This document shows positions 1-27,400 of a stretch of DNA of 64,000 nucleotides, piece by piece; positions within the stretch are counted from its first letter, which is position 1; the number at the start of each line of letters is the position of its first letter. A program made the position numbers and the translations under genes. The DNA is from Macrostomum lignano (Eukaryota). A model generated the notes under the pieces. That model worked only from the letters and a program-made list of their open reading frames with translations. It was not told the DNA's origin and did no database searches. Location of the stretch: NCBI GenBank assembly GCA_002269645.1, contig NIVC01000276.1, positions 1 to 64,000 on the forward strand. Direction: 5' to 3'.

Positions 1-99
1 TTAAACTCGACGTGTAACTTGTCACCTCCGGCTGAATACTTGCATAGAGACTTGGCCGGATTGGCGTCTGCTGAGTCGAGTTAGCAAGGTCTGTTGTCT

Positions 100-925
100 C
101 TATCTGTGAGACCGAAGCGACTTCGAAGTTAGTGCCCAGTAGTTTGGCTTCTCGCACACAATTGTCCAGGTGGGTTGCCTCATACTCTTGCAGCTTCTGT
201 ACGCTGGCATGAGTACAATCAACTTGCAATGTACCTGTTGGGTACTCTTGTAGCACTCCTCTCATGACGGCGAGGCATTCTCCGTGCTGATACTGATTTA
301 TTCGGTCGGAGGACGATCCCCGGAAGATGAGGGAGACGGAGGCAGCAGAATCATCAACAATGGTTAACCGGGCACGATTCACGTTCTTCCATTGTTTCGT
401 AATGATAGGTGACGGTTCCTCCACCTCCACGTGCGGATGTCCACACGTCTGGAAGAATGAACAAGGAGTTGTGTCATGTGCCTTATGCATTCGTTCGTAA
501 AACAAATACACGTTTAATATTTTTGTGGCTTTAGCGGCTTTTACTTAAAATTGCCGAGTTATCTAGTCAGTTATCTTCTTAGTTAGAAAAACGTACGAGT
601 GCATAGCCACACGTGATAGATTGGCAATGTGCTCAAACCGTATGTCAGTCGTCGGGCTCCTAACTTCTATCACTTATTCCGTCGGCTCTAGTACGCCGGA
701 ATCCGCAGAAAAGGGAAATTTCCTTGGAATTTTGCGCAAAATTGTATCTCGGATTAGCACTCCTGACAGTGCCAGCGAAAGACGGAAACACTTGTACCTC
801 AGTACCTTCTCACGGAGTTCGGCTAGCTTGTCGCCAAACACACTGACCCGAATTTCTCCGGTTACGTCAGAGAGAAGGAAGTTCAAAACCTCTCCTGGCT
901 TGCCAGTTTTGCTGGTGAACGTTCA
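100..925 (-). pseudogene. RPA70-like OB-fold fragments 3' of the Helitron helicase
   Basis: TFTSKTGKPGEVLNFLLSDVTGEIRVSVFGDKL (~925-800) resembles RPA70 DBD-A (..[22 protein letters not shown]). NRARLTIVDDSAASVSLIF (~380-325) resembles a further OB-fold strand. RPA70-like genes are an established Helitron cargo. Confidence 0.65.
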
Positions 926-3272
926 GTAATTGTTTAGGTAATTTTAACAACATTTTTGGAACATAAATAAATTAGTGAAATACGAGTATAATTAATATAG
1001 ATTAACTAATTTCATGTACTAAATGTAGTCTTCACTTAGACGCTGATTACGTGTCAGCTTGTGCTGCTGAAATTCAGGCTACAGGGTACTCTTGTTGATA
1101 CAGGTCTCAATTGTGTTGGCCATTGTACCGCCTTTGATGACTGCGAGAAGCTGCCGAAAATCACCAGCAAGGACAGTCGTTATTCCGCCAAATGGTCTGT
1201 CAGTCACAATGTCTCGCAGAATTCATTCCACCGTATCCAGAGTCCTTCGATGGATCATAGCAGCCTCATCCCAAACTATCAATTTAGTGCGCCGCAGTTT
1301 TTCGGCTAAATCAGTTTGTTTTCCAACGTTGCAGAAGCTTCCACGTTGGTTTGATGACGACAGCGGGACCTTAAAAGCAGTGTGCAGTCTGGCCTCCCGG
1401 AAGCAGAGTTGCGGCGATTCCTGTACTTGCCACTGCAAATACCATCTCTCCCTCCGCTCGAACGCGGGAAATCAAAAGCTCTAGCAGAAAGCTTCTGCCA
1501 GTTCCACCGGCTGCGTCAATAAAGAGCAGCCCACCTTTTCCTGTTTGGAGACTGGCGCAAACAGCATCATAGACAGCTCTCTGCTCGCGGTTTAGCAACT
1601 GTTCTCTCTCCTCCACGACAGTAAAAAGCTCTTGGATAGCTCGTATTAAACTCTTCATCAATACTCGTCTGCTGGATAGGCTCTGGAAGATGAAAATCAG
1701 AGAGACTATAGCCACCCATCGCTTGCAGTCGCTTGGACAGATCTTGAAGGACTCGGTTGTCCAACCAGGCTTCATCAGCAGATTCTCGTTGCGCAAAATC
1801 TTCGCCCATGGCCATACGAAAACGGGACCACAGGTCTCAAATACTTGCGGGATCTCCATGCACCAGAATAACTGAGAACAGGCACCGCAGAGCAGCCGGC
1901 ATTTGAGTCTCTACAGCCTCTTCCAAGCACAATCGCCAATGCGCATCATTTTCCAACATCCCCATTGCCACACAGGCTTCCTGGAACGTTGGGTATTCAA
2001 TTCCATTTACTTTGCGCAGAGATTTAATGCTCGTGGCCCCGGAACACGCAGTAAAGCCAGGCGTAGGTAGAAAACCTCCTTCGCTCGGGGACTCACAGCA
2101 TATATCCGACCAATGCACTCACGTCTCTTAACTCCATTATAGCCTTCTACAGGAGATCCTTTCGTTGTTCGTTCCCAAACCTTCCTAACTGCCCGCTAAA
2201 CGTAGTATTGAGGTACCTGCCTCAATACTACGTTCCACAGAAGCTTCAGAAGCTTCTTAGCAAATGCATCATTTTCGAACAACTCAAAAAATGCCGTCAG
2301 TGCACTTCTCGGGGCCCTTGAAACCTGAGAGACGGCCGTCTGCTCGCTGAACACTACGCGGTTTTCACCAGGCAGATGCACACACAGCTGAACTACTGGG
2401 GGGTGGCGACTGTGAATGTGAAATCCGAAAATCTGAGCACCTTCATTGAGTCCCATGTAACGCGTCATCATGTAGGCATCAATTTCATCAGTCTTAGCCC
2501 GCTCACGCTGCGGGACTGTCAATTAGCAAATCGCCATGTCAGACCCTTTGTTCAGATACTTTACCAGGCACTTAATAGCCTTAACTGTTGCACAAACTTC
2601 AACGTTAATATGGCAGCGGAATTCACGCAGTAGGTCAGGATTGTATGGGACGACAAACCTGTGTGGGTGGGGTTGTTAAGTTTCTTGAACAAAATGTTAG
2701 TACGCTCGTAAATCATTTGGAAATCCATCGAACTCTGACTTATTATTTATGAATCAGATACCCATCAGTTATTTTAAATATGCTAAATCTATAACTACAC
2801 AGTTTTTTATCGGCTGGATAATAGCTTTTACACTTACCTATTATCCATCACAAATTCCTTTGCACGAACGAACTTTTTGCCGACGTGCCCACCCATGGCA
2901 GGAGATCTGCGGCGGTAAAACGGGTAGCCAGGGTCATTGATAATCGTCGCTGCTTGATAATGCTTCGGAAATCCCTTGCTGCACATTCCATTCTTCATAC
3001 AAACACATGCCGGATTGAGGTCTCCACAGGGCCCATGAAGCATATTGTCAACTACCAACTGGTGCAGCGCGGGGTCATTTTTGGGACTTAAAATCTCTGC
3101 AGAAACTACTTCATCGTAGCGAGCAGGTGTAATACGATCCTGTACAGCCAGCCAAAGCAGGATGTGCACATGCGGAAGTCCTGTGTAAGGTTGAGATAAT
3201 GGTGCTAGGGATTTGTGGTGTTAACTAATCTGTTACCATTATTTGTGTTGTATCTATTTCTTTCTCTCTATC

Positions 3273-3276
3273 CCTC

Positions 3277-3330
<54 letters not shown>
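3273..3330. repeat. (CT)n microsatellite inside a Helitron intron
   Basis: Nearly pure ctctct run, with degenerate CT-rich flanks to ~3420. Confidence 0.95.
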
Positions 3331-3333
<3 letters not shown>

Positions 3334-5424
3334 CCTCTATCTCTCACACTCTGACTCTCCCTATCTCTATCATGTTTATTTGTTCATCTCTCTATTTCTC
3401 TCCCTCTTCTCTCTCTTCTGTTTATTTCAATATGGAGTATTACTCAAACATACTGTTGGTTCTGGAGGCACAGACACTATAACACCAATTTTGATGCAGC
3501 CTATAGCTAACTCGGTAGTTTCTTAAGTGCTCCAGTTGAGCAGCTCTCACTATCACTTTTATTTATTGTGGCCTTAGAACGAGGCACCGCTCATTCAAGT
3601 TGTACTGTAATGCTAGTGGCGGTCATGCCATAGATAAAAGTCTATATCAAATTTATACTTCTAACACATACTACTATGTTAACTATTCCAATTTGATTTC
3701 CTATAATAATATAGACTTATCTATTAGCCTGGAAATCTGGTAAATCAAGCATAACTCAACATGTTCGTGCTCTTACCGCGCTTCTGGTATTCTAATGAGC
3801 ACACGCGAGCCACATGGACACCAAAAAGAGTCTTGATCCGCATCAGAAGCGCCTTTCTCTTCATGTCGAAAACTCGCATCGTCAAGTCAGGCCTGTCAGC
3901 TACAGTCTGTCCAGGCATCAACTCGTCGACAATCTCCTGCCACTTCGGGTTAGCTGTCATTTTAATGAACAGGTCTGGTCTGCCGAAGCAGGATGCACGT
4001 ATCTCATTGCATCCTGCTGACGCTCCCTCATAGCACGGACCACCAACGAAGCTGGAAGACAAAATCGTGACAGGCCTACCCACTCTGCTTGCATCTCCGT
4101 CAGAAGCAACCAAGGCATCCTTCAGGCCGCTGTATGTCTCAGATCGCAGTTGCTCCTGATGGGCACGAATAAAGCTCAACCACTCGGCTTCAATCTTAGC
4201 GGCTTGATAAACAATGTATTGTTGAAAAAGACGCTTGCCATGATGCAAGGGGTTTAACACACCAGGCCGAACCATGAGTAAGTGCGAGTACATGGCCTTG
4301 GGAGTCAAATTCCGACTGTTGCTCATTTTCAGCCCCAGGTGCCAGCCATCCTGTCCGTACGGATGAAACAACACGTACTCCCGGGCATCATAAGAGCGAT
4401 GTGTCTCATCGATTCTCTTCAGACCACTGCCTCATCCTTCAGTACAATATCCTGCCTGGATTCTGGGCCTTCAGTGTCATCGTCAAGGGCGTCACAAAGA
4501 ACCGCCACCTCGCTGACCATCGGTAGATTGAATCCCCTGGATAGAGGTGAAAATAAAGGTAATTACAATATTTTTTAGCGTCTGTTGTGGTTTTTTGAAA
4601 ATAAAGGTTCAATTTTAAACTTGCATTGAAAATATAAAGAAAAATTAGAAGTTCGAAAGTTAGAAGAAATAAAAAATATATATACATACGTACCTTACAT
4701 GCTCTCCAGCCGGCCTTCGATCAGCTCAGATCACCAGACATGCATTCTGTAGCGTCGGATCCTCCGTCAGTCTGTCGATAGCAGCCTTGAAGCTTTGCAC
4801 ATAGCTGTTATCACGATAAAGCATGGTCTGCAGCAACTCCAGTAGCTGAGGGTCCAGGTACTGCACCATCTCCAACCGCGTCTAAAGCTCGGTGTCGCAA
4901 AAGAAGAGCTGACAGAACTTGGCAAATCTTCTGTCGTCAGGAAGAAGGCTGCCGATTCTGTGGTAGATTTTTCCGTGAATAATTACGCTCGCGTATCCGC
5001 CAGACATTTGCCGCTCTTTCACGCCAAAGGAGGTCATGTGTAGAGCGGCATTATACTTTCGTATGTTGTTTAGAAAAGTGCTACTCTTCTGGTGATCCCC
5101 AGAGTACAACTGTTTCAGTTCCTCAGGCACGGTCGGCGGCGCGAGGTTCACCTTGCCGCCGCTTCAGCAGAGCCCTTTGACCTTTAGCTTCCATCGCAGG
5201 GCACCGCAATCACTGCATGGCCAGATCATGCGACCGGCTGAGTGCGCTGCTGCTGGCTTTGACGTGTGCGAAATATGAGTGCTGCAATTGTTAGCAACAA
5301 AAGTGCCAAACTAATCTTCTTTATACGAGCGTAATAAATATAGATATTAAATGGACTGGTACTTCTCAAATTTCCACTTGGCGAACCTGTCAGATCAACA
5401 ATCATACATTTTAGAAGTTTGTAC

Positions 5425-6166
5425 TCACGCTGTGCCAGTGCGGTTCTCAGCCCCAGCTCGCGCCCCAGCAGTAGCAACAGCAGAGGCTGAGGGGAGCCTG
5501 TCAGCATCGCTGAAATCCTCATCACCACCAATTTCCCCAGAGGATTGGCCATGTCTGCTGCTCAATGCTGCGTTACTGACCATGGAAGCCTCAGGCAGCC
5601 ATGACTGACTCCCAGCATCTCGAATGGAGTTCGCTGAGGTGGAAAAGCACGATAGCACAGACTGGTAATGCATATTGTGCAGAATTACCCTCACTGTTGC
5701 CACAGGAGGTTGCAAGGGGGACCAGAAAGTCCTTAGCACACCTCCGTTCATCTGGTAAATCACCAGGTCAAAATTGAAACATGTGCTTAAGAACGGAACG
5801 ATTTCGTCTGGAACAGCGACATCCGGCGTCCAAGAGGCTCTCAAAATAGCTTGGGAGGAACCCTGCACAAAGTCACCACGTGTTTCAATTTCCAGTATAT
5901 GGGGTGCAGCACGGCGCGTAAGCTCCTGGCGCAAGTAAGTAGCTGTATTCACTTAGCGGCGTGCCCTTCAGTTAGTCACAAACAGCGTGATAAAAACAGT
6001 TGCCGTCACCCGGAACGTCTTGCAGTTGCATTGGAGAACTGCAACTTTGCGGCATTACGGCCTGGTTTGTTGATGAGTCGTTTATGTAATGTAGCTGGCT
6101 TGATGATGGCACCGCCGTTGGGCGCCACTGAATGGAACGGAATCGTTCCATTACTTTACATTGCAT
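5425..6166 (-). pseudogene. OTU-like cysteine protease domain (Helitron N-terminal module), disrupted
   Basis: LQDVPGDGNCFYHAVCD* (catalytic D/C loop), then VILHNMHYQSVL (catalytic His). In-frame TAA at 5972-5974 and a frameshift at a tact/tact duplication near 5935-5945. Confidence 0.85.
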
Positions 6167-6739
6167 ACAGAGTCGTTGAGACCTTTCTTCCGCGCTTTCA
6201 TTCTGGCGGCGCTGCTTGGCCTACCTTCTCTTTACTTCAGCATTTTTGCGCTTTCCCATTGCTTAAACTTCAAAAACAAACGGTAGAAGACTTCACAAAC
6301 AAACGGTAGAAAAAGAAGAAGAAGAAGAAGAAGGTATCTTATTACTTACAAACAACCGGTACAACTTTAGTTATTTAGATTAGCCATAGAGTATAGATTT
6401 CTCTAGCTACGAGAAAAATACATTGATTAGATAGGGAAAATACCTGTTTTTACATCAAAAGTGTACTTAATTTCCGTCAAAAATATAGAAAAAATAGCCT
6501 CTGCTGGATTTTTTGATTTCCTACATAGAGAAATAGATTTAAAAAATTGGTTCAGCCAATCGGCCTGCAGCGTGAACTTCACAAACAACCGGTACAACTT
6601 TAGCATATAGATATCACAAAATCTTCTCCAAATCAGAAGCATTATTTGGAACATTGAAGTGAACAAGCCAACAGTATATTTAGCAACAAACACAACTGAC
6701 ATAAAAACAAAACTTAGCATACTCAACTTGAATGATCCA

Positions 6740-7950
6740 GTTGAAACAGTTTTCGGATGAGAGTTCTTACATGTACATCGTCTTAGTCACGGAACGTGAT
6801 TTCCAGCCGCCCATCTTCAACGACAATAGACTTGACCCCCAGATGACGCCCGTCTGTGGCTCGATCGGCGCCGATGATCCAGGCGAGACAGAAACATTCT
6901 GCAGAACATCAGAGGCCAGTCGAGCAACTTTAGCTGATGGCCCAATGTATCGCTCCATCGCAGATGAAGAAGACCGGTAAAACGAGCAATTTCTGGCCTT
7001 GACATACCAGCATCTCGAAGCGTGGTGGCACAAGTCTTTCTAAGACTCTGATTCGTGTAGAGACCTCGGGTAGACAAACAACCAGATTCCGAACAACAGC
7101 TTCCAAACTGTGGAGACCAAGCGATTGATTTTGGTACCACTTGCCGGAGCGAATAGTGTCTTCCTTGCGATGCACGATAGAAATAGCTGCGGCTAAGAGC
7201 AGTCTGGTGGACAATAGCCAACGTACTTCTTATACAGACACACTAGGCAGCGAACATGACCGGGAGTGTGAAACACAGTGCATAGCTTGAGCGGCCCATT
7301 AAATTTCTTCAAACCACAAGGACTTGTCTTTAAAACGGAACTCTCTTTGTACACGAGAACCTCGTCCGTGCCTTCGATAGAAAGCTGCAGCTGCTTGTTG
7401 ATATCGAGTCTGTGTAACTCCCTACCACCTCGCAATCCGATGACTTTACCGATCAAAAATATTAGGGTGTTCCTCCCATAAGATATTCTCACTATCTGAA
7501 GCAATTGGTGCAGCTACCCGTCCACCATTGAGTTGTCCTTCCCGGGCGGTCTCTCGCATGGCAGCATCTAGCGCACGTCGCGTTTCAGCGAACTCGGCGT
7601 CAGTCCAGATGGAAAGAGTCCGTTTAAGTCCGTAAAAAAAGTGGTGTTGGATCATGGAGACTAGATCTTTGAGGGTGCCAGGTGGAAAATTTTCTCCGTT
7701 CTCTTCACGAACTTCGAACACAAAATACTGGAGCAAATTATTCAGGTCAGATTTCGCGAGATCCTCGGTTGGCTTGATAATCATGAGTCCCGACTCTTTG
7801 CCTGCCAATTGACGATTGACGCGCGTGTCTTTCCATAGATTAGCAGCAGGCAAACTTTCGTCGAATCTTTTTTTAGAGCAGCTTCGTCCAGGGACTGAGC
7901 AGAAACTCAGTTGTCGACTCACTCCGAAAGCAGCAAAGAAGGCGTCGAAA
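6740..7950 (-). mobile_element. Crypton-like (CryptonA/DUF3504, ZMYM/KCTD1-type) tyrosine recombinase, frameshifted
   Basis: LNNLLQYFVFEVREENGENFPPGTLKDLVSMIQHH (DUF3504 N-part); GLRGGRELHRL (catalytic R); RCLVCLYKKYVGYCP; KWYQNQSLG; GLYTNQSLRKTCATTLRDAG..IARFTG..SSSAMERYIG (HxxR-like, TG-H and Y motifs). Split over ORFs 7446-7922, 7193-7504, 6930-7214, 6817-7221 and 6767-7033. Confidence 0.88.
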
Positions 7951-8681
7951 TGGAAGTCTTCTAAGCCTTCTATATTGTATTATTGATTCTAGTTCGAAGA
8001 AAAAGCGACTTTAAATTCGACTTTTACGCTTTGCCACCACTGATTGATTGGCTGCTTCGTGACTGCATCTTTGCTAGAAATTTATTTACTTTTCTGTGGT
8101 CGGAATCGAATGGTCTGAGCATATGTCTATCAATCAGATGGGATGCCCACAAAAAATAAGCAATCGAATTTCATATATGATAAACGCCGTTTAATTCATA
8201 ATAGTCTATGGTTAGAACATTCTAACCACAGAATGTGAATTAAACGGCATTTCTTGTGTATTCATTCCAAGAAGTCGTTCGAATTGCAATGCCGCTTCGA
8301 ATTGCATTGTTCTTTCTTTCCCAGTGAACTCATTTGTAAAGCAATACAAGTTACGGAGCGCGGGGGTTTGAACATAGACTATACAGTCTATCTACCATGC
8401 ATAAGCATTTACAACATCTCCTCTTTCAGAACTGTCCATTCAGTCAGTTGCTCCCACACATCTCCCCATCAGCACTAGTAGCGCTTCTTGCTTGGGTCCA
8501 TCATCAGCCTGTCCGGGGGCCGTACCGCTCGGCCTGATCTGGTCCGAAGTTCTTTTTTGGCAGTTTCTTTTGGCTCTTGCATTTTGAATCGTAGCTTTGA
8601 CTGCATCTGGTGTGTTTGCTGTTGCTGCTGATTACCAGTAGGTTCTGTAGTTCTCGATTTTAAACCAGTTTTTCACCAAAA

Positions 8682-9320
8682 TCTCTACCTATAAAAATCA
8701 AAACTCTGTCTGTGTGTCTGTCTGTCTGTGTGTCTGTCTGTCTGTGGACAATTTTGATCGCTATGGACTCCCAAACCGCTCAACCAAATTACACCAAACT
8801 TTACACCCACCCTAAACTTACTACGGAGAATGTCTTAGGCTACCTTTTAATTTCCTAGACTCAAGTCTTCCTACCTAAAAGTACAAAAAACTGCTCAAAA
8901 TGCGCGATTTTTTCACTTAATCCTCCATAGCGCCGCTCCACTTCTACCGATTCTCTTCAAATTTTACACAGATAATCTTAAACTATTTTGGCACAATCAT
9001 GTAAATTTTCGAGTCTCAAAGTTAATCCTGAGCGGTGATGTGCACTTTTAAAGTTAGGCTGTTTTTTCAGCGTAGCAACCACCCCAACCTCCGCCCGCCT
9101 GCCTCTCTTTCCCGATCTGGGCAAAGGGTGCAAATAGGTTTTTAAATGACTAACTTTGGGCTGTCATAAGTTTGCTTTACGTAAAGCGATTGACTTCAAA
9201 TTTGACAAAATTCTTCATTGACTTATTCTCTGTCCAAATATAAAGTCTCAACTCTGTATCTCAATCAGAACAGAAACTGTAAGCATGTAAAGTTTGTCTG
9301 CTTTTTCTGTTGTTTGTTCT
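8682..9320 (+). mobile_element. Possible non-autonomous Helitron/Helentron-derived (DINE-1/HINE-like) repeat
   Basis: Starts A|TCTCTACCTATAAAAA followed by a (TGTC)n-type microsatellite at ~8707-8745, a layout typical of non-autonomous rolling-circle elements. No 3' hairpin-CTAG found, so the right boundary is a guess. Confidence 0.35.
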
Positions 9321-9879
9321 ACTCACTCACTCATTCCCCCAGAGCCAGACGAAGGGTCAGGCGATAGGGCTCAATGTACATAGCGAATGTACAGTGTTTT
9401 GGAATAGCCTTCTCTGTACCCCCGTGAGTGGAGAGGCGTGGAGAGGAGAGAGTTTAGCGAGAGACAGTCCGCAGCAGTTTAACAGTGGATGGCAAATCAA
9501 GGCGATGTGGGATGGTTTGTAAAAATAGCGAAAAATTAATGAATAACTGATTACAATGCAATCCTACTAAATTGCTTACACCATGAAAATTTTAATATTA
9601 AGATACGAATAAGGTACTTAAAAATTTAAATAACCTAAGAAATGCGTTTTTCCTTGGTTGTTAGACTGCTGCAGACTGTGGTGGTGGAGCTAGAGAATGG
9701 AGATACACAAATTCCTCTTAGGACTGCTAATTGGCCAGAAAGAGCACGAGAAATTATAACAACCATGATAGTACTACGTCCCACAAACTGGCTTTCGAAG
9801 CAGGGATCGGCAGATTTTTATCTCAAAGGCCAGATAAAGAATCAAGCTTATGGCTGCGGGCCAGATGAGAGTGAAAAGG

Positions 9880-11290
9880 AAAAGGAATAGACTATTAGAA
9901 AGGGAGGAGGGGCGAGAGGGGATAAGAGAATATATAGAAGATATCAGGAGAGACGAGGGGGTCGAGGGCAGAGCAGAGAATATGGGAGTCGGGAGGAAGA
10001 AGCGAGAGGAGGGAAGAGAGAAGGGAGATGGAATAGTAGAGATGAGAAGATGGAGAGAGAAGAGGGGAGAGATGAGACAGAGGATCAATGAGAGAGGAGA
10101 GTAGAGAAGAGTGAGAAGAGATGAGAGATGAGAGAACAGAGAGGCAGATGAGAGAGGATCGAGAGGAGAGGTTAGAAAGGATAGAGAAGAGAGGAGATAA
10201 GAGGGGGATAGAGGGGAGAGAGAGGAGTGAGAAGAAGAGATAAGAGATGAGAGAGGGAAGAGTGAGAAGATGAGATAAGATATAAGAGATAAGAAGGGAA
10301 AGTTGAGAAAGAAGAGAGGAGAAAGGAGAGATGATAGAGTAAAGGGAAGAGGAGGAGAGAGGAAAGAGATGAGATCGTGGAGATGAGAGAGATGAAAAAA
10401 AAGATGATCGAGAGAGTAGAGATGAGAGATGAAGGAAGAGAGAGCAGAGTGCAGAGACGAGATAAGAGAATAGAGGGGAGAGAGTATAGAAGAGGGAAGA
10501 GAAGAGAGGAGTAAGGAAAGAGGGGTGTCAGAAGAGGGGAGAGAGAAGAGTACACAGTAGAGAGGAGAGTAAAGATGACAGATGAGAGATGGGAGATGAG
10601 AGAGCAGAAACTAGAGTGAACAGACAAGAGATGGGAGAGTAGAGAGAAGAGGAGAGATGAGAAATAAGAGATGAGAGGTGCACACAAGGGAGAGATGAGA
10701 AGTTAGTGAGGAGAGAGGAGGGGAAGGGAGAGAATCGAGAGGACAGGGGAAATTGGTGAAAAGGACGAGAGAGAGAGGAAAGAGGGGAGAGATTAGAGAG
10801 AAGAGAGAGAGGGGGGGGAGATAGCAGAGAGATGAGAGGAGAGAGAGGGGGGGAGAGGAGAGAGAAGATAAAAGAAGAGAAATGAGAGATAAGATAGCAA
10901 AGACGAGAGAGAAGGGAGGTGAGGGAAGAGACGATAGAATACATGAGAGGAGAGAGTTGAGAGAAGAGAGGAAAAAGAAGAGAGTAGAGATAATGAAAGT
11001 GTTAAGAGAGGGTATAGTAAGGAGTGAGAAGAGAGGTGAGGGAAGAGAGAGCAGAGAGCAGAGGGAAACGAGAAGAGATAAAGAGGAGAAAGGAGATATG
11101 AGAGACCAGAGACCAGAGAGAAAAGAGGAGAGGAGAGAGAAAAGAATAGAGGGGAGAGGGAAGAGACGAGAGAAGAGACGAGAGAGGAGAGAGGACAGAG
11201 GAGAGAAGAAATAAGAGATAAGAGGAGAGAGAGAGAGAAGAGACAAGAGAGAAGATAGGAAACAGAAAAGAAGATGGAAGTTTCAAAGGA
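9880..11290. repeat. 1.4-kb GA-rich (polypurine) low-complexity tract
   Basis: The plus strand is almost entirely A/G (gagaggagagaagag...). The ORFs over it are S/L/F/P-rich or R/E/G-rich artefacts. Confidence 0.95.
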
Positions 11291-15172: not shown

Positions 15173-15745
15173 CGAGGGTCACTTAGAACACAAACACAAA
15201 GCCTGAACACAAAACACCAATAAATGAACTAAAAAACAACTACAAATGCTCAAAGTACTCTCCCCCGCGGCATTGGTACAGGCTTGCATCCTGTGAAACC
15301 AGCTATCGAAGCATTGCCGCCAATCCTCATCCCGGAGCTCCCCGATGACGCTTTTGAACTCATTCACAGCATCTTCCGATGAAGAAAAATTCGGGTCTCC
15401 CGGATCGATGTTCATCTTCGACGCTTTCTCGACCTCGGCGAGAATTCAACCAGTTTTAGACGGTTGCGTATGAAGGACATAGATGGGTGAAAATGTTCTG
15501 TAAAGCCTTACTTGAAGTGCAAGTACATCATTGCTCTAAAGTCGCGATTTTCCTGTTTCATTGTTGAATTGAATGACACACGGGGTGAACTTACTTTGAC
15601 GACTTCGCTGCAGTGAACTCAAAAGTGGCTGCTTCTGTTTGAAAATCTTGTTACGATGCTTTTAAAAGTTTGTCTTTACGACAAACTTCATGCTTCTACG
15701 TCTCGTGGATCCTACTCAGGCTAAAAACGTTCTGAGAGACCGTCA
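15173..15745 (-). mobile_element. Internally deleted mariner (Tc1/mariner) element
   Basis: TA|CGAGGGTCACTTAGAAC terminus at 15171, with a degenerate inverted copy at ~15729-15745 (gttctgagagaccgtca). N-terminus MKQENRDFRAMMYLHFK (ATG 15561) and PSYATV*NW..GRESVEDEHRSGRP joined directly to the C-terminus FSSSEDAVNEF..DWRQCFDSWFHRMQAC..AGE. The DDD catalytic core is missing. Confidence 0.85.
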
Positions 15746-15883: not shown

Positions 15884-16952
15884 TGTAGTGCTCGTAGTCC
15901 GCTTGGCGGGTAAGAATCTTGGCCTTTAAGAGCCGTATATTTGCGATATATATTCACGCAGCTGCCGACGTGCAGCTATGAGTTACGCAATACATTGGGG
16001 TACTGAGCATGTTGGCTAGAGAGCAAGAGAAAGGGCATTGTACACGCATAGTCTGCGCACCACATCTCTCCCCCAAAGCAAAAGAAAAGTCCAATACGAG
16101 AGGGTACAGCCGAAGAGGACTTGCAGTCGATTGCGGCCGGTCTCGGCGACAAAGAGGCAGCAGGCAAAGACGTCGAAACACTTGTAGCCGCGCTTAACGA
16201 CGACTTCGACAGCAAGCGGAATCTCCCGTTCACCCGCTATCAATTCAGGTTGTGCACGCAGCGGTCCGGCGAGCCCATCGACGAATGGCTCCAGCGCCTC
16301 AAAGATGCTGCCGACTGCTGCGGCTTCGAGGGCCTCAGAGACTCCCTGATCCGTGACCAGGTGATCGCCGGCTGCAGTTCAGAGCAGCTTCGCCGCAAGC
16401 TGCTAGCGATCGACAATGTCGACCTGGAGCAGGCGCTTCGGGTGGCCAGAGCCATGGAGACAGCAGAGACTCAGGCAAGCCTCATGGAATCTAACGAGGC
16501 GGCAGTACAGCGACTTCGACTTCGAGACACTGGTGCAGCGGCCTCATCAGCAGAGCGACTAGTCAAGGGACCAGCCAAGCAGCAGCCAGGCAAGCAAACC
16601 ACGTGCATCAGATGCGGAGTCCCGGGCCACCGCACATGCAACGCAGCCAGAGGCAAGACGTGCGAGCGCTGCGGAAAGCGAAATCACTTGGCGAGGGCCT
16701 GCCTCTCCCGGCCGTTGGAAGCCGTCTGCGCCCTGCAGGCCGACAGCGACAGCTCAGAGCCGGAGGACAGCATCTTCTGTCTGACCGTGGCGGCCACCGG
16801 GACGGCTACAGCGGGCGCCCGCACAACAGTGCTCGTCGACTCAACGCAGCTGCCGACGTGCAGCTATGAGTTACGCAATACATTGGGGCACTGAGCATGT
16901 TGGCTAGAGAGCAAGAGAAAGGGCATTGTACACGCATAGTCTGCGCACCACA
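15884..16952 (-). mobile_element. Small non-autonomous LTR element (1069 bp) with 5-bp TSD and inverted internal Gypsy gag
   Basis: TSD GCTGG at 15879-15883 and 16953-16957. Full LTR 15884-16064 (TGTAGTG...CACCACA). Partial LTR 16844-16952 is identical over 109 bp except one base. PPT GGGGGAGAGA abuts the LTR on the minus strand. Confidence 0.9.
16121..16843 (+). pseudogene. Gypsy gag fragment with two zinc knuckles
   Basis: FDSKRNLPFTRYQFRLCTQRSGEPIDEWLQRLKDAADCCGF..LIRDQVIAG..LRRKLL (retrotransposon gag), then CIRCGVPGHRTC and CERCGKRNHLARAC knuckles. Confidence 0.9.
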
Positions 16953-18199
16953 GCTGGTGATGACTTTTTTTATACAAAAATGATCAGTTTATTGATTTCC
17001 TATCCAGGTAAGCCTCAGAGAGGCTGAGAGACGGTGGATCAGAGAAAAAACAGGAAGAGGAAGGGAAGCATGTTGAACAGTAAAGACTGCATGATGCTAA
17101 ATAAATGATGAAGACGCCAAATAAAAATATTTGGAAGCAAGCAGGGAAGCAAGAGATGAGTAAAAGGGGGTCATTTTCTTCCCTTAGTAGAAGCTTTCAG
17201 TGCAGAATTTTTCAGTGCCTCCGCTGTTTCATTAATTCTATATTCATTATTCCCAATAAACTGGCAAAAATTCAATCTACAAAGTTGTTAAAGTCTTCCA
17301 ACTTAATACTTTGACTTGCTACAGTGTACTTGCTTAATCTTCAATGAACCACTTTCCGGACAGAATTTTCCATAGCCTCCATAATCCCATTAATTTCATC
17401 TGTATTATCGTATCTTTAAAGCTTCCCAACATACTCCTTTTACTTGGTACTTACTCGTCCCTCTCATCATCCATTTGTAGTACGTATTCTTCAAATCCTA
17501 TTTAATTCGCTACTGCAGTCCTTTAAGCCTTTATCAGAGGCTTTTTGCGCCTCAGAGGATAGAAATCAATCACTTAACACTCTGGCCTCCTACTCGTGTC
17601 AGATGATCAGAGCATAGGAGTGGCAAGCAGCAGGTCATGTAGCTAAGAGAGGACAGCGATAGACAAGCAGGGAGAGTTTGAAAGTAAGAAAACCAGCTAA
17701 TTTGGGGATTAGGCTAATCCACCACTACCAACTCGTGCAAACTGGCTCACCAAACAAGCTCTAGCTAAATCGGGTTTCAATGTCATGTCGAACAACACTA
17801 CTTTTAATAAGTTAAATGAGCTTAACTATAACAAATATTCTATGTTAGTATTCAAATACAGTTATTTCAACGATACAGCATATCAGAAATTTCAACGAAA
17901 TATATGTCAAGTTTTGTGCGCTAGAATTACCGACCGAATCACTCGTAGTTCTCTGTGTGCTGGCTCACGAAAAAATTCACCGATACACAGTCCGAGTGAC
18001 CTTGGCAGCAGGGGTAGACAAGAACAGTATTTCTGAATACCTTTCTGCCAGGAAACTCTGCATCTTTTGGCATGTCTTTGATTAGCTGCTGCTGTCAGTT
18101 CAGCAGTGGTCAATTTTAAAATCGGAGTAGTATAGTAAGTGGTCAGCAAACCAACTTTAGATTTTTTAACCTGTCAATACATTCAGAAATTCAGTATAA

Positions 18200-20565
18200 T
18201 TTTTTTTGTCTGGAGCTCGGATACTGAGTACAAACTCGCCCATAGACTGTACTGTGGCCTGCAAGATCGTCTTTTAGTGAGGAGATTGTTGGTTTTCTTA
18301 GAAGTGATTTCCAGTCCTTTAATTATTTTGAGTATCAGCTTTTTAGTTCATGTCAACAGAAATTTTTACTCTTTCATTACAATTCGTGGCTCTTTTCGTA
18401 CAGTACGAGCCATGCTCACGAACTAAATATCCATAGACATTTGCAGCTCAGCAGCCATGAACGGCTTGTGAATAAAGTGCATTTGTTAGCTAAATAAAAG
18501 TTCATCACAATGCTAACACTCCTTCCCGTTAATTAATTAATTACAGTTAATTAGGCACACCCAGCTTGTGATAATTCAGTCGCACTGGTACTCGTCGATG
18601 GCGCTGACTCCTGCGAAGACCAGATCCTTGTTCAGCAGTTTCTTCTGTCTCCGTCTCCACCAGGTCATCAGAACCGGCGATCTTCGGTTTTGTTTGTTCA
18701 CGATAGTAGCGTCCGCGCCTTCCGTCCTCCAGCTCAACGTCGACCACAACATTTCCCTCCGTTGCGACTACTTCACCAGACTTCCATTTAGTCATCTCGT
18801 TGTTGTATGTTCTTACCCAGACTGGCTCACGTGCCAGAGAGAATGCTGGAGTGCGGAGCAGATATCCTCTCATCAGCTCAGAGGGCGATTTCCCAGTTGC
18901 TGAGTGTCTTGAATTCCTGTATTGCAGTAGAAACCGGTCGAAGCAGCTCTGAAGGTCGCCTTCCCCTGCAGCTCTGATGTGATTTTTTAGGTAGGTCTCT
19001 CACGAAGCGCTCGGCCAATCCGTTTGACCTTGGATGATAAGGTGGTGTGAGAACATATCGGCAGTTGATTCCTCTTAGCCAACCTTCCATTTCTTTCGAT
19101 ACGAATTGAGATCCGTTGTCCGAAACAATAGTCACAGGCACGTCTTCTTGAGCGAACGTTCTTCGCAATCGCTTGATGGTCTCAGATGAAGAGGTTCCTT
19201 TAGTCACGTGAACTTCAGCCCATTTGCTGAACGCATCAATTAGTACTAACAGGTAGTTTCCTCCCTTCATAGGTCCTGCGTAGTCCATGTGAACTCTCGA
19301 CCAGCACTGGGTCTCGTCCGGCCAAGAAGTCCATTGTCGAGTTATTCCGTGATCCTTGTTCATCTGACATGAACTGCATCCTTTTGAGTACTTTTCGATG
19401 TCTCGATCTACATCGGGCCACCAGACACATTGTCTAGCTATAGATTTCATCTTCTCAGGTCCGATATGCCCTTCGTGCAGCAATCGCAGAGTTGCGGAAC
19501 GCTCCAGCTTTGGAATAACCAGCCGAATACCTCTGTACAGTAACCCATTCTCGATGACAAACTCGTCCCTGAATCGACTAAACTGCTGTAGTTCTCGAAA
19601 TCCTTCTGTCTTCCAACCATACTTGACTTGAGCGAACAGCTTCCGAAGTTCTGAGTCCTCTTTCGATTTCCTTCTCAAGCTCTCCTTGTTTATAGGAACG
19701 TCCAGTAAACAGTCCTGCACTGAGCTAATATCAAACTGTTCACCTTCAGATGTGTTGTTGCTTAGTCTTGACAGCGCGTCGGCTACAGGAATCTCGGAGA
19801 ATCTTTTGCGCTCAACAACATATTCGTAACTCATCAGAGTGATTGGCCAGCGTTGCATTCGGGCTGCAGGCACAGTTGACAGAGATCTCCCCGGATCGAA
19901 GATGAACTTCAGTAGCTGATGGTCTGTTCGGATGATGAACTTCTGGCCTAGCAAATACTTGTGTAAGCGCTTCACGGCCCATACGATAGCAAGAGCCTCG
20001 CGCTCGATTTGAGCATAGTTACGCTCCGCTTGTGTCAGAGTCTTCGAGATAAAAATTACTGGTCCAGTTGATTGCTCTAGAACTGCACCAAGTCCAGAGG
20101 GTGATGCATCAGTTGTGAGAATGATCTTGTCGGCTGGATTAAAAGGTTGAAGAGCGACTGCGTTGTACAGCTGATCCTTTATGCTCTTGAGCGCTCTCTG
20201 CTCTCCTGAGCCCCAGGTCCATTTTGTCCGTGTCCTGATCAGTCTCGTTAGAGGTTCCTTCAAACTCGCGAGATTCTTGATGCACCGTCCATAAAAATCG
20301 ACCATTCCAATGAAGGACTGCAACTGCTTAAGATTTTTTGGCTCCTCTATTCCTGCAATTTCCTTGGCTTTCTTCGGTGGTGGGCGAATGCCACTTTCAC
20401 TGATCTCGTATCCCAGGAACATGATTGATGGCTTGTCAAAGTTGCACTTATCCTTGTTAATGCTCAATCCATTATATTTATGATTTGAAGAACTTTGGAC
20501 AGCCTTTTGTCATGACTCTGTTGGTCAAAGCCCCACACTAGAATGTCGTCCTGGTACAACTAATA
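18200..20565 (-). mobile_element. Gypsy pol remnant 2 (RT C-part, RH, INT) with PPT and start of 3' LTR
   Basis: LYQDDILVWG (~20550). ORF 18878-20467 has TTDASPSGLGAVL, RTDHQLL, HEGHIG..CSSC, HMDYAG, SDNGSQF and SNGLAERFV. C-terminus LRRSQRHRRVPVRL. PPT GGGAAGGAG (18527-18519), then TGTTAGC LTR start at 18518. Left LTR boundary not determined; 5' half absent. Confidence 0.93.
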
Positions 20566-21483
20566 TACTAAAGCATATAAATGAGCTTCTGCTTGAACTC
20601 ATCTGCCCACAGCACCTCCCTTTCTCCATGAGGTTAACAACCGTTACAGTCAGTTAATCACTAGGCCAAGTCAATCCTTACTTTCGGTTCGCTTGCAGAC
20701 GTTCGCTTCGCCTTGGTAGCTCAGGCCTTGAGCAGGTGATGTCCTCGACCTCGGGCTCCTCAGGCGGGTGAAGGTCGGGGGCCATAGACAACTTATACGG
20801 CATTCGAGATTGGTCCCAGTAGCTTCGAATTCATTGCAACATGATGTTGCTTCCTTTCTTGGCTCCCCGTCCGTAGCGTCCGTCGTCGTTGGGATGAAAC
20901 CGGTACAATCAGTCAAGATGTGCCTTTTTCAGCCGACAATTTGAGAGTTGAATGATCGCAGTATTTTGTCCAAGAGGAACCATTAGGTTGCCCTCGCAAT
21001 TGTGCTGTCCCGCCTTGTAGACTACAGCCTTATTGGGAATCCACTCTGCTGACGTTTGCAACGGGACTCGCAGCTTCCGACGCAGCTGTGGACGATCCTA
21101 TCTTGCCGAAAGATGATCGATAAAATAGGAGATACCGTTCGATGGAAGCCTGGCTGAAGTCATTTGCTTTTATCGCCTTCTTTATAGTGTAGTGATACAT
21201 TTATTCATATAATTAAAACTACAACTACTGTAACAAAAACATTTGTAGCAGAATTATACCTTGAATAATTTTACTATCTACTATGCAAGATGAACCAAGG
21301 TTTCCCCGAATATCGTAAACAACGAACCACGACCCCAAAGAAGGTAAACGGTGTCCCGAAAAAATCTATTCAACTGTCAAGGGGTCGAATTCTTAAGAAC
21401 TAACCCTTTCACCCCATCAAAATTACCTTGTTTATATTGCCTATAAATACAAGCGCTTAGAGAGCCCAAAAATCTCAGAGTCG

Positions 21484-24400
21484 TGTTATGTTTTGGATAT
21501 GAATGTTATATTACGGCATAGCCGTCTGTGCTGCGCTTAGTTCGTATCTGCAGCTCTCGTATATTTAGCTTGTAAAGACATAAAGCTAAGGTCATAGACA
21601 ACTTAATTCGGTCTGTCTGCGACATCCCTTTTTTTCCAAAAAGAAGTGTCATACGCATTAATGGATGAATGAATGAAAATGGCATTGTCAGTTAGTTCAG
21701 TTTGAGTGCATATAATTATGTAGCCTTGTAAAATTGAGTTGGCTTCACTTCACGTCCATATCGTGTAATGTATTTTGTTCCACCAGATTTTCCAGAATCC
21801 AGCTGAGAATTGTGTACTGTATCGGATGCATGAGCGTCTGAGCTGTGAGTCTGAATCGTTCCATTGTTAGAATCCTGATTAGGTAGTTGAATCCTTGAAT
21901 ACTCTGGTATGGTCTGCATTCTGCGGTCTGTATTGCGCTTTGCCAGAAATCTGCGATTTCGTCTGAGTTCACGACCTGTAGCAGTTCGAACTTTGTATGA
22001 CCTGTCTGGGTCAGTGACATCGGGTTTCACGATTTCTGCAGGAATCTATTGTCTTCGATCTTCTTGCATCCACACCTGATCTCCTTCTTTAAACGGTCGT
22101 AGGTCTCGTGCAGTGGAATTGTAGTAGAATGCCTGTTTACTGTTCTTCTTTGCCAAAATTTCTAGTTCACGTTTTGTCCACACTTGTCTTGGTTTCAGCT
22201 GTTCAATGGGCAGTGGCAGTTGATATCTGAGCTTTCGTCCCATCACTAGCTTAGCCGGTGTCGGTAGCTCTCTTTCAATTGGCGTATTCCGATAGTGTAG
22301 TATTGCACAATTTATATCTTCTGCTTTGTTTAAAAATCCTTTAACTGTCTGAACAGCTCTTTCTGATAGGCCATTTGATTGTGGATATTTTGGCGACGAT
22401 GTCCTAATTCGTATACCTTTCTGTTCAGCAAACTCTTTAAACCTGTTGGATCCAAATGGAGGTCCGTTGTCACATCTTATCACTTCTGGAGTACCATAGG
22501 TAGTAAAATATTGTGACAGCTGTTTTATGACGCACTCTGCTGATGTTGTCGTGATCTTATCAGTGCAGATCCATCGACTAAACCTGTCAACCAGGACAAT
22601 GTGTGTTTCCCCTTTCCAGTAGAAAATGTCAGTTCCACACTCTTGAAAAGGATACTCAGGTACGAGCTATTTCAACCATTTTCATGGATTCTTTTTGATG
22701 AAGAGCTTGGTAACTTTGGCATTTTTCGCATGAAGAAATGTATTGCTCAATGTCATGGCGCATTCGAGGCCAAAATACAGATTCAGTAGCCTTCATCAAC
22801 GTCTTTTCCACGCCTTGATGACTTTCATGGAGGATTTGAAGCATTTGTCTTCGCATTGCATCAGGAATGAATATTTTGCTGCTCTTGTATATGAGTCTGT
22901 CATTCTCCATCAGTTCATGCCGAATATTCCAGAATGGCTTCAGTTCTTCAGCTATTTGGGATTTGGCATCTGGCCAACCCTCTCGAATCTGGCCCTTTAG
23001 CTTATGACATAAATCGTCAGCATTTGTGTGATGCTGGATGTCCTTTAGCAAGTTGTCTGGTAGGCATACACGAGCTACTCCAAGTATTTGGCACTGAATG
23101 TCATCATCAATATCATTGGATGAATGTACGGATTTCAGATAAACGCGGCTTAGTGTATCCGCAAGGTATAGTTCTTTTCCGGGTACATACGTCACATTGA
23201 GATCGAATTCTTGAATTTTCAAAGCTAGTCGCTGCAGTCGAGCTGATAGTTCACTCAGTGGCTTTTTCATAATGAATTGCAGGGGCTTGTGATCTGATTC
23301 AACCTGTACGTGCCGACCCCATAAGTATTGTCGAAATCTGCGACATCCAAAGACTATTGCCAAGAATTCTTTTTCGATTTGAGCATATTTCTTTTGAGCA
23401 GGAGTCATCGATGACGATGCGTATTCAATGACGTGTCCGTCTTGCATCAATGCGGCTCCGAGTCCATCTTTACTGGCATCTACACTTAGAATGACACTCT
23501 GATCTGGGTTAAATTGTCCCAATAGTGGAGCTTTGCACAGTGATTCCTTAATTGCTTCATATGCTTCTTCCTGCCGTTTTCCCCAGTTCCACGCTACATC
23601 TTTTTTCAGTAACTGTCGCAAAGGTGAAGCAAGCGCTGAGAAATTTTGTATGAACTTCGACAAGAAGTTTGCGCTGCCGATGAATCTTTGTAGTTGCGCG
23701 GCTTTTTCAGATATCTGGGAGTAACTGTTCGGATGCGGCATGTCTTTGATGCTTCGTATCTTTTCCGGATCGATCTTGACTCCTTCGCTGGTTAGAATAT
23801 GTCCTAGGAATTTCAACTCTCGCTGTCCGATTTTAGCTTTGGTCTTGTTTATCTTTAAATTCTTATCCTTGCACTGCTGTAGCAGTTGCCTCACCGAGTC
23901 ATCATGCTCTTTTCTTGTTCTGCCCCACACGATTATATCGTCAATATAGTTTGCGGAGTTTGCAACATGACTCGTGATCTCTTCTCTGATTTTTCTCTGA
24001 TACGCCTCTGGAGCATCCTTCAATCCGAATGGCAGTCTGTTCCACCTGTAGACTCCGAAAGGTGTATGAAATGCGGTTAGAAGAGAGCTTTCATGATCTA
24101 AAGCTACTTGATGAAATCCTGCTGTAGCATCAAAAGTTGAAAAAAACTTTGCGCCAGTCATCTTGCTAATAATTTCATTATATGATGGAATTGGGTACCG
24201 GTCTCGAATTATGAACTCGTTTAGACTTTGCGGATCGAGGCAGAGACACAGAACTTTCAGGCTTCTACACAACCACAACGTTGGATACCCACTCCGTGGG
24301 ATGCGAACACTGGGAAATCATTCCTTGCTCACTGAGGCGATGCAGCTCATCTCTTAATGCTTTCAATGCTGCAAACGGTACTTTTCTTGGACCCTGAACT

Positions 24401-25170
24401 CTGGGAACAGCGTTCGTCTGTAAAACTATGTGGTGTGTTCCTGGCAGACAACCTAGCCCTTCAAAGATATCGGCGTATTCTTTCAAAATCACTTCCTTTG
24501 TAAGTGGTTCTTCCGATACCGGTACATCCTGTTGAACAGCATGCAGTATCCGTATCAGTCCGAGACTCTCTGCTGTATTTGTCTCAAGCAATGGCATATT
24601 ATCTTCAGCAATGACAAAGAATTTTGCTTGAATTTCTTCATTCTGGTGTCTGAGAAGCAGTTGAATTTGTCCCAAAACTGTCAGCCTCTGTTTGTTGTAC
24701 ACAACTAACTGTGTGCTTCTATCCTCTCGGTATTCCTTCTTGGTAATCTGCCTAAGTCTTTTTGCAGACATAATGTTAACATCGGCTCCTGTGTCGATTT
24801 TAAACAAAATCAACTGACGATCCTCAACCAGTACACTCGCGATTGTCTTACTGTTCGTGCGAGCGGTCTTATTTTCATTATTTCCAGCCATCTGGTCAGA
24901 GCTTGCAACTGAAGATACAGCCCATGATTTTGTTAAGCTGCCCTCTGTGTCTTCGTCATTTTCGTCATCATGTTCGTCTACCAGTCTGACATGTCTTGTA
25001 GGGTTATTTCGAAACTTTTGCTGACACATGGCTTTAAAATGGTTCTTTCTTCCACAATTACTACACAGCTTTCCAAATGCAGGACAGTGCTTACTACCAA
25101 AGGTGTGCTGTTTTCCGCAGTATCTGCAACTGGTTATGCCCTGATGCGAGTCCTTGCGGGAGCCTGTAAC
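21484..25170 (-). mobile_element. Gypsy remnant 3 (gag knuckles, PR, RT, RH, INT, PPT, 3' LTR), 5'-truncated
   Basis: CRYCGKQH..CSNCGRKNHFKAMC (~25140-25020); FKIDTGADVN; FDATAGFHQV, NYIDDIIVWG, SVDASKDGLGAAL, ESDHKPL and HESHQG..CEKC in ORF 22656-24278; CDNGPPF..SNGLSERAV. PPT GGAAAAAAAGGGA, then TGTCGCAG at 21624; LTR probably ends near 21484 (..CATAACA). Confidence 0.95.
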
Positions 25171-25199
25171 TGAAAAACCGGAAAAGGAGTTCGTAGTTT

Positions 25200-25930
25200 A
25201 GTATATGTATAGTTACGGATCAATAGTTACTAGTAACAATGACGGATCCAGTACAGGATGTTGGCAAATGCTGCTTCCGAATCTCCATGCGCACGCCACC
25301 ACATGAACTCCTGAATATAGGACTCGAAGAGCTCACTCAAATCCCCATAAGCCGCCGGAACTTGGCCTTGCAATGAGCCCATGTGCCCTCGATGGTGTTC
25401 GTATGCAGGGTCGGGTCATTTAGGTCCACAAAATGTAGGTGATGGTTGACAAACTGATGGTTGGCAAGCTGGTTGTAAGTTGGCAGTCCTGTCAGGCACC
25501 TTGACCATCACGCACTTATTGGTCTCCCTCTCCACCATTCCAAGGACCCAAAGACCCTCCCTATGGAAGAATTTGCTCTCGTCGATTTCAACGGTTGAAC
25601 CAGGTCCGCCCAGTTGCACAGGGTGGTCGAGGAAAAACTGGCTGCAGATGTCTCGGACAAAGTTAAGCCAATCGACAGCAGTGTGGTCGGCCACCTTGCA
25701 AACGTGCACCACCACTGTCTTGCTTTCATCTCTGGCCAAGTAGTAGATCAGGGTAATGAGCTGCTGGAGTTCCAGATGGCTACGTTCAAAGAAACTCCCC
25801 TTGCGTATATTTACCTGTGATCAACAATTCTTGCAATCCCAGGCGTGCCCATCCCAGTACCGGTGCCCTTCTCTGTGTTGTAAACTCATTGGTGTACCAT
25901 CACCATCACCATAGTGCATTGTCAGATAGA
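25200..25930 (-). mobile_element. Merlin (IS1016/ISXO2-like DDE) transposase remnant
   Basis: DGHAWDCKNC..IRKGSFFERSHL; QLGGPGSTVEIDESKF; LWVLGMVERETNKCVMVKVPDRTA; NTIEGTWAHCK..FESYIQEFMWWR. Internal deletions; TIRs not identified. Confidence 0.88.
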
Positions 25931-25975
25931 ACTCTAATACAATTGAGTTAGAACAGTAACAGATCATGGCACAAA

Positions 25976-27400
25976 ACAATCAGGTGCACGCCGATCACGT
26001 GTGCTTCTGTGCGCTGCAAGTCCAGCTTCCTGTTGGTCATGCATTGGCTGCTCCCCCTGGTCCAGAACCTCCGAAGCCGCTTCCTCCTCCTACTCAGTCC
26101 CAGGTAGCGGGGCGATTTTGTTGCTGCTCGCCAGTCGCAACTTGTCCTCAGCTAAAAACCAGGAAGTATTATGTCCTCGCCACATCAGGAACTCGGCTTG
26201 GGAGGAGGGAGCACCAAAGTTGGGCTTTTAGACCACTTTGGCGCCCTGTTGAAACGCAGAAACTACTGGAACTCGATGGGACCATCCAAAGAGCAACTCA
26301 GCCGGCCTCTTACCGCGCCAGACAGAGGAGTTGTGGTGGTGCAGAAGCACTTTCTGCAAGTAAGAAATACATGTAAAGTCACAGTGAGTCAGTCGCTGAG
26401 TCCAGGTTTCAAAGATCCTCTTAACTGTCTTTACAGCGCGTTCTGCGGCGCCGTTGAATTTTGGTGAGTAGAGCGGTGATTCTAACTGGCGCACTCCGTT
26501 AGCTTGTAGCCAGTCAAACAAAACTTCAGATGTACAATAAATTCAGCCTCGTTATCGGAAACAACTACCTCTGGAACACCAAACCGGCAAAAAGCAGTCC
26601 AAAGGCAATTCAGGACGCTGTCGGCAGAGCTATCCTTTGATAGAAAGGCCCCGATCCATCCGGAAAAGGCATCGACAGCTATCAGAATGTTCCCAACTTC
26701 AGGCACGAAGGCCAAATTCATGTGGATTCTCTAGAATGGGGTCGATATCGGGGGCTAAATTTCGCGTGACTTCATCAGACAGGGCCTCAATTTAGCGCAT
26801 GCATAGCACTGGCGCACGAACTCCTCCGTGTCGTGTGCATTCCAGGCCGCCAGCAGGATACTCATTCAGCCGAAACTCCTGAATGAGTATCGTAAACCGC
26901 TTTGAATGCTTCGAGGCGCAACCGAGGCGGAATGAAGATACACCTTCTCATGTACAACAGACCATTCTTAATCGTCAGGCATTCGCTACCTTCTTGAACG
27001 GCATCTCAGCTTCTGAGCAGTCATTCCAGTTTCCTGTACGGATCCTCTTCATCACCCACTGAGTTAAGGAGTCGGCAGCGAGTTCAATAGCAATTCGCTG
27101 TGCAATTGCAATTCGCAATTCGCAATATCTTTTCCATCAGCCTGTCATTGGGCCAGATCCAAGCCGCCAAAATTTTAAAGCCGAGGTTTTAAATAAAATT
27201 TTATTTAAATTTTATGCGAAGAAATCATCGCATAAGTGAATGCATTTTTTTCTCATTGGCACGGAATTTCTTCTCTGCCAGCCTCGTCTTAACCGAGGTC
27301 AGTCGACGCTTACTAAGCGAGTCGGCATTTTCAGCAAAAACAAGAACATCATCCTGATAAATAGGTATTCCTTTTAGATCGGCCAGGATGCTCTGCATCG
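25976..27400 (-). mobile_element. Gypsy remnant 4 (RT YQDD, integrase), heavily deleted
   Basis: MQSILADLKGIPIYQDDVLVF (~27400-27340); FVRQCYAC (Zn finger); LIAVDAFSGW..FGVPEVVVSDN; SPLYSPKFNGAAERAVKTVK; terminal RDRRAPDCF*. Confidence 0.88.

Follow-up and report, generated by a model that had tools for sequence, protein, structure and literature searches.

A unistrand cluster of PIWI-interacting RNAs (piRNAs) is defined by its output, namely one long single-strand precursor together with 24-32 nt, 1U-biased, PIWI-bound small RNAs, and DNA sequence alone therefore cannot show piRNA production. Flamenco and the flamenco-like clusters are dense arrays of truncated transposable elements (TEs) that lie in one orientation, contain prominent Gypsy remnants and adjoin protein-coding genes (PMC10643416, PMC11400887), and in Drosophila flamenco-like loci can be predicted from nothing but their strand-specific coverage by Gypsy elements, at a precision of ~0.76 (FlaHMM, PMC11400887). 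Macrostomum lignano possesses 436 piRNA clusters, both uni- and bidirectional, with a median size of 9.7 kb and a share of 0.63% of the genome (PMC4604429). Here, we describe a block of broken transposons in the left 27.4 kb of a 64-kb window (the whole stretch of DNA analysed, positions 1 to 64,000 of contig NIVC01000276.1), which an initial annotation had proposed as a candidate for a flamenco-like unistrand cluster. With a probability of roughly 60%, this block is an ordinary transposon-dense, gene-free stretch, that is, a nest of truncated, abutting insertions located 5′ of a 14-3-3 epsilon gene.

Like the flamenco-like loci, the block is a dense array of truncated TE fragments, contains prominent Gypsy remnants, adjoins protein-coding genes and lies largely in one orientation, a bias that is here weakly beyond chance, but it differs from them in several respects. 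Those loci extend over hundreds of kilobases and are dominated by env-bearing Gypsy endogenous retroviruses, whereas ~27 kb of the present block is visible and no env-like domain was found in Pfam scans of it, env being poorly covered by Pfam. The size of the block is a lower bound, as its left edge is open, and is well under the hundreds of kilobases typical of flamenco. Furthermore, unlike in flamenco, Helitron, Crypton, mariner and Merlin elements account for about one third of the TE sequence recognised in the block. The unidirectional clusters of M. lignano (Zhou et al. 2015, PMC4604429), which probably come from the same species, are likewise transposon-rich, and the block falls within their size range (median 9.7 kb, maximum 93.7 kb). 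However, flamenco-like loci are defined by soma-specific single-strand piRNAs from a mapped promoter and the M. lignano clusters by uniquely mapping 28-32 nt reads, while the present block is known from its sequence alone. Another related phenomenon is the genic antisense bias of long terminal repeat (LTR) elements and long interspersed nuclear elements (LINEs), an excess opposing the direction of the host genes as is seen here toward the neighbouring genes; this bias has been documented in mammalian introns (PMC3517506, PMC1794541), whereas the block is apparently intergenic and includes DNA transposons, for which the bias is weaker. Finally, ordinary nested transposon nests share with the block its abutting truncated elements of mixed ages and superfamilies, the absence of any intact copy and the absence of host exons.

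For the identification of coding remnants, stop-to-stop open reading frames (ORFs) of at least 50 aa were translated strand by strand and scanned against Pfam, stretches with internal stops were scanned as translations with X at the stops, and 41 Gypsy polyproteins served as tblastn queries to refine the borders of Gypsy elements. Exact-sequence look-ups of three ORF translations (1371-1859, 3745-4326 and 24265-25029) matched no recorded protein. Positions 1-27.4 kb proved to be a dense pile of broken, abutting transposons lying on the minus strand nearly throughout, with recognisable TE coding remnants covering ~18.6 of the 27.4 kb (68%) on the combined Pfam and tblastn map. Dense packing of TE fragments over tens of kilobases, as expected of a cluster, is thus present. 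At least nine separate insertions of five superfamilies and of differing ages have accumulated in the block. The eight independent minus-strand elements that had been claimed from the reading frames, i.e., one Helitron, one Crypton, four Gypsy remnants, one mariner and one Merlin, were all located by Pfam, tblastn, homologues or motifs. The claim of an almost complete one-strand layout largely held as well, since the plus strand carries no transposon domain detectable by Pfam and the gag of a small element at 15.9-17.0 kb is the single exception. Indeed, no Pfam family appeared on the plus strand at E<=0.01, either among ORFs of at least 50 aa in 1-30 kb or when 1-9900 and every gap up to 30.5 kb were translated completely in three frames. 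The Pfam scan of the gaps on the minus strand added nothing further, no host exon was detected by the Pfam scans on the plus strand of the left 27-30 kb, and Rfam and tRNA scans of the block gave no SINE-like (short interspersed nuclear element) or other RNA features. Neither LTR pairs nor terminal inverted repeats were found for any element, except for one pair of 112-nt repeats at 15956 and 16844. All elements had also been described as fragments with none intact; no intact copy indeed exists, but the mariner is an internal deletion that retains both coding ends rather than a truncation.

The leftmost element is a Helitron coding remnant (2-6220, minus), which is cut by the left edge of the window and broken into at least 12 reading-frame pieces. 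In minus-strand order it contains an OTU-like motif (5975-6013), a Rep domain (Helitron_like_N, 3775-4290, E=3.8e-34), a PIF1 helicase (1374-1595 and neighbouring pieces, E=3.1e-31) and RPA-type oligonucleotide-binding (OB) folds (227-910), the last with sub-threshold matches to REPA_OB_2 and tRNA_anti-codon. The arrangement by which a Helitron is recognised, with a Rep/HUH domain and a PIF1-type helicase in this order on a single strand, is thus found on the minus strand. Next to it lies a Crypton-type, tyrosine-recombinase remnant (6820-7979, minus) of three frame pieces with matches to QRICH1 (E=3.7e-7; 30.6 bits, cut-off 30.8) and DUF3504 (E=7e-6), both narrowly below the Pfam cut-offs. 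QRICH1 and DUF3504 are domains which we take, after Kojima and Jurka (2011), to be Crypton-derived. In the mariner (15243-15561, minus), the N-terminal helix-turn-helix (MKQENRDF...GRESVEDEHRSGRP) is fused straight to the C-terminal tail (...CFDSWFHRMQ...GGEYFEHL and a stop), the DDD catalytic domain being deleted. By these coding motifs the mariner is an internal-deletion derivative rather than a truncated copy. Its HTH_48 match is weak and sub-threshold (E=0.0068, 17 bits) and was obtained on a hand-stitched frame; a PDB search with the tail returned chance matches only, and Pfam gave no further support. The fragment of a Merlin, or IS1595-like, DDE transposase (25233-25820, minus) covers ~205 of ~320 aa in three frame pieces. 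It is itself below Pfam detection, but has 23 homologues, the best at 78% identity, and nearly all of them carry PF12762 (DDE_Tnp_IS1595), the transposase domain that defines the class.

The four Ty3/Gypsy remnants, here designated Gypsy-A to Gypsy-D, all lie on the minus strand. Gypsy-A (12198-14560) encodes protease/reverse transcriptase (RT), RNase H and integrase, with Pfam matches to RVT_1, Integrase_H2C2 and rve and a tblastn match to Gypsy polyproteins at E=2e-98, and has several frame breaks and no LTRs. Gypsy-B (18850-20559) is 5′-truncated and retains RNase H and integrase (H2C2 and rve) behind the last part of RT (LYQDDILVWG), with one ORF of 529 aa. Gypsy-C (21725-25197) has nearly the full coding region from the gag zinc knuckles through protease, RT and RNase H to integrase, in ORFs of 310, 540, 145 and 104 aa with a few frame breaks and no LTR pair; it is without the N-terminal part of gag at the junction with the Merlin fragment. 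The nearest relative of its pol is an M. lignano protein at 68% identity, followed by the next best at 44%. Gypsy-D is heavily degraded and consists of an integrase core (26231-26978; rve E=2e-8) and an RT fragment with YQDD (27228-27401; RVT_1 E=1e-4). The domain order RT, RNase H, integrase is found in Gypsy-A, -B and -C, and LTRs are absent in all. Since the integrases of the four remnants are, by eye, very unlike one another, Gypsy-A to -D were counted as separate families and independent insertions.

The ninth insertion is a rearranged piece of a young Gypsy family (15884-16955), in which gag lies on the plus strand, a leader-like piece on the minus strand, and 112-nt direct repeats on either side of gag. 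By tblastn, gag residues 55-303 on the plus strand (16106-16852) are 97.6-98.4% identical to two M. lignano polyproteins. By phmmer, three long polyproteins match the plus-strand gag ORF (16052-16891) at 96-97% identity across 252 residues, and at least two of the three, PAA93919.1 included, are M. lignano proteins. Judging from this TE identity, and not from a host gene, the DNA would come from M. lignano or a species very near to it. This gag at ~16.1-16.8 kb is the only plus-strand Gypsy homology that tblastn detected in the whole 64-kb window. The 48-nt leader-like piece on the minus strand (15884-15925) encodes RPRFLPAKRTTSTT, which agrees at 15 of 16 residues with the sequence immediately before the gag start in the reference polyprotein P0189. 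The direct repeats (15956-16067 and 16844-16955) are 98% identical to each other, but they show no homology to the 5′ extension of P0189, and neither a primer-binding site nor a target-site duplication was found that would identify them as bona fide LTRs. A plain plus-strand Gypsy fragment was considered as a reading of this element and was rejected in view of the minus-strand leader-like piece. The initial annotation had regarded the element as a small minus-strand LTR element in which only gag is plus. The minus orientation of the outer leader-like piece and the plus orientation of gag agree with that description, but LTR status of the repeats is unsupported and the longest and best-supported part of the element is plus. 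By its reading frames the small element is of mixed orientation.

Decay is uneven across the block, being heavy in the Helitron and moderate in Gypsy-B and Gypsy-C, while the gag of the small element is near-identical to long polyproteins found elsewhere. A degenerate GA-rich (polypurine) tract of 1.26 kb (9993-11255) lies between the Crypton and Gypsy-A; it is polypurine on the plus strand only and contains tandem repeats of period 2/7/21 with ~59% matches; the GC skew across 10-12 kb is +0.60 and the AT skew +0.44. This tract is no transposon coding region, and judging from its composition it could form triplex DNA.

How far the strand bias exceeds chance depends on which elements are counted, the counts here covering the coding elements within the 64-kb window. 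The chance of 1/128 given for eight of eight co-oriented elements is correct (p=0.008). With the gag of the small element counted as plus, 8/9 are minus (p=0.039). To the right of the block, a plus-strand LINE remnant had been reported at 29.5 kb; a stretch resembling the thumb of RT and a CCHC-like knuckle were found there on the plus strand (29424-30227) by motif reading only, in accordance with a putative 5′-truncated LINE 3′ end, but no Pfam family supports it. With gag and this putative LINE both counted as plus, the fraction is 8/10 (p=0.11). Two further remnants lie on the minus strand, namely a BED zinc finger remnant (36183-36407; Pfam E=6e-4) inside the 14-3-3 intron and a P-element/THAP9-like transposase remnant (47112-48966) between 14-3-3 and VPS52, the latter by motif reading only and with no Pfam support, so that the whole window gives 10/12 minus (p=0.039). 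The post hoc choice of the block borders was handled by enumerating all orientations of the window's 12 elements. When the borders may be chosen freely, the probability of a run of at least eight elements all alike is 0.023, and that of a run of at least nine with at most one exception is 0.083. The M. lignano assembly Mlig_3_7 comprises ~764 Mb. With a genome of this size and probabilities of 0.023-0.083, several hundred to ~1000 such 64-kb windows are expected by chance. The strand bias is real, yet only weakly beyond chance (p ~0.01-0.08, according to the treatment of the mixed element and of the borders).

As an ordinary nest, the block would have arisen by accumulation of these insertions, which were evidently trimmed by later insertions and deletions. 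The eight elements would have come to be co-oriented mostly by chance, the bias being perhaps increased by mild selection against insertions that point in the same direction as the plus-strand genes nearby, and no dedicated function would be needed for the block. AATAAA occurs 18 times on plus and 12 times on minus; the plus strand is thus not depleted of it, and nothing indicates that selection has kept a plus-strand transcript uninterrupted. Several observations weigh against an ordinary nest. First, all eight of the unambiguous elements, from five superfamilies, share one direction, and their minus-strand coding remnants amount to ~17.7 kb against 0.75 kb on plus. Second, ordinary nests are normally of mixed orientation, whereas here the ratio is 8 to 1. 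Third, the minus trend continues in the two remnants further right (10/12 for the window). In addition, miniature inverted-repeat transposable elements, SINEs and solo LTRs are not orientable and do not enter the counts. There may thus be a real cause behind the bias.

Among such causes, it is conceivable, though unlikely, that a plus-strand host transcription unit extends over the block or is read through into it. The unit could be the 14-3-3 gene with a long 5′ intron, or an upstream gene whose tail reaches this far; sense insertions would have been purged from it because they bring terminators and splice sites, leaving an excess on minus. The antisense bias of LTR elements and LINEs in mammalian introns is well established (PMC3517506, PMC1794541). 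The two flanking genes with several exons, 14-3-3 and VPS52, are both encoded on plus, and such purging would fit the minus orientation of the BED-finger remnant within the 14-3-3 intron and of the P-element-like remnant that separates the two genes. However, the plus strand of 1-30.5 kb has no exon-like Pfam match, and the 14-3-3 start codon is already in the exon at 31.5 kb, with no exon known upstream. The base composition also differs, CpG observed/expected being 0.65-1.0 in the block, with ~44-49% GC over the left 27-30 kb, but 0.12-0.29 in the large 14-3-3 intron (32000-38000), with 29-34% GC. The undepleted AATAAA on the plus strand is a further point against a host unit.

Similarly doubtful is the unistrand cluster proposed in the initial annotation, with a plus-strand transcript that would start left of the window. 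On this reading, transcription from an RNA polymerase II promoter would give a long plus-strand precursor, and the piRNAs cut from it would be complementary to transcripts of the Helitron, Crypton, Gypsy, mariner and Merlin families, would load into a PIWI protein such as Macpiwi1 and would thereby silence these families. Eight minus elements face one mixed element in a block 68% of which is TE coding remnant, unidirectional clusters of up to 93.7 kb are known in M. lignano, and Macpiwi1 piRNAs are mainly antisense to transposons (PMC4604429). When Gypsy coverage is counted by tblastn in 5-kb bins, a measure akin to that which reaches a precision of ~0.76 in Drosophila (PMC11400887), three of the six bins (10-15, 20-25 and 25-30 kb) are minus only; however, two (0-10 kb) have no Gypsy and one (15-20 kb) has it on both strands, and no env-bearing element was seen. 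The bias is weak once post hoc borders are allowed for, and it is the only sequence-level signature of a unistrand cluster in the block. The plus-strand AATAAA signals are undepleted, the youngest datable fragment (gag, 97-98% identity) would be sense on a plus-strand transcript, and ~4 kb further on such a transcript would hit the promoter region of 14-3-3, a housekeeping gene of the same orientation. Moreover, the prior is low, because a genome share of 0.63% corresponds to ~1% or so for any transposon-rich block; a likelihood ratio of ~15 for the 8/9 bias set against this low prior brings the cluster reading to ~10-15%. It accordingly seems improbable that a plus-strand unistrand cluster, of which the block would be the visible part, ends here directly 5′ of the co-oriented 14-3-3 gene; such a cluster would hold an antisense memory of five superfamilies, rolling-circle and tyrosine-recombinase elements among them, and would represent a flamenco-like architecture arisen independently outside arthropods.

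Least probable is transcription of the block on the minus strand, for instance diverging from around the 14-3-3 promoter or started by promoters of the elements themselves; the small RNAs would then be mostly sense and would serve as ping-pong substrates rather than guides: the promoters and poly(A) signals of the elements point that way, bidirectional clusters exist in M. lignano (PMC4604429), and a minus-strand transcript through the small element, whose repeats and leader in minus orientation flank the inverted gag, would carry antisense gag of a young family, but all elements are truncated and without LTRs, so that their own promoters are mostly gone.

The window is of animal origin, and its right half is occupied by host genes with many minisatellites between them. 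The 14-3-3 epsilon gene (31473-39742, plus), whose 5′ side lies ~4 kb from the right border of the transposon block, shows 79% identity to human YWHAE over residues 21-251 by tblastn; exon 1 with the start codon lies within 31473-31658, and the remainder of the coding sequence is at 39050-39742. An 81-bp tandem repeat of seven copies with 98% identity (38253-38815) ends ~240 bp 5′ of this main coding exon. From the conserved C-terminal region, the 14-3-3 epsilon frame runs stop-free (39050-42208, plus) into a 36-bp minisatellite (39723-42145) of ~68 copies with 91% matches, and the resulting read-through ORF of repeat units comprises 1050 aa. Either there is a splice donor or an alternative end ahead of the 36-bp array, or this is a 14-3-3 copy with a long repetitive tail. 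VPS52 (53.6-59.4 kb, plus) is recognised by Vps52_CC (E=3e-52) and Vps52_C (E=4e-59), and the closest relative found for a VPS52 exon shows 78% identity. A 25-bp unit, CACTGAAGTGAGCAACCAGATGTGT, occurs in two arrays 4 kb apart, one of 19 copies (46244-46709) and the other of 111 copies (50863-53627), and VPS52 exons become recognisable right after the end of the 111-copy array. Further arrays, with units of 20 nt and 60 nt (54104-54798, 55273-56980), lie in or over VPS52 and are spanned by one long ORF. At the right end of the window, Pfam identifies a gene of the sperm-flagellar type with a CH_2 domain (62.5-63.0 kb, minus). Rfam gives a match to the Histone3 3′-UTR stem-loop at 50061-50106 on the minus strand, with 35.1 bits against a gathering score of 34 and no adjoining histone ORF; it is probably a chance match or a transposon-borne hairpin.

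For the study of piRNA loci, the block is above all a caution, as chance should produce an 8/8 run of orientation within 64 kb hundreds of times in a repeat-rich genome of this size. Therefore, orientation alone is unfit for calling piRNA clusters without a genome-wide background. Even as a unistrand cluster, the block would be just one more locus of a class already reported for M. lignano and would bring no new principle. Such a cluster would, however, indicate that a single-strand 'trap' can hold DNA transposons besides retroelements, which would be useful to comparative piRNA biology.

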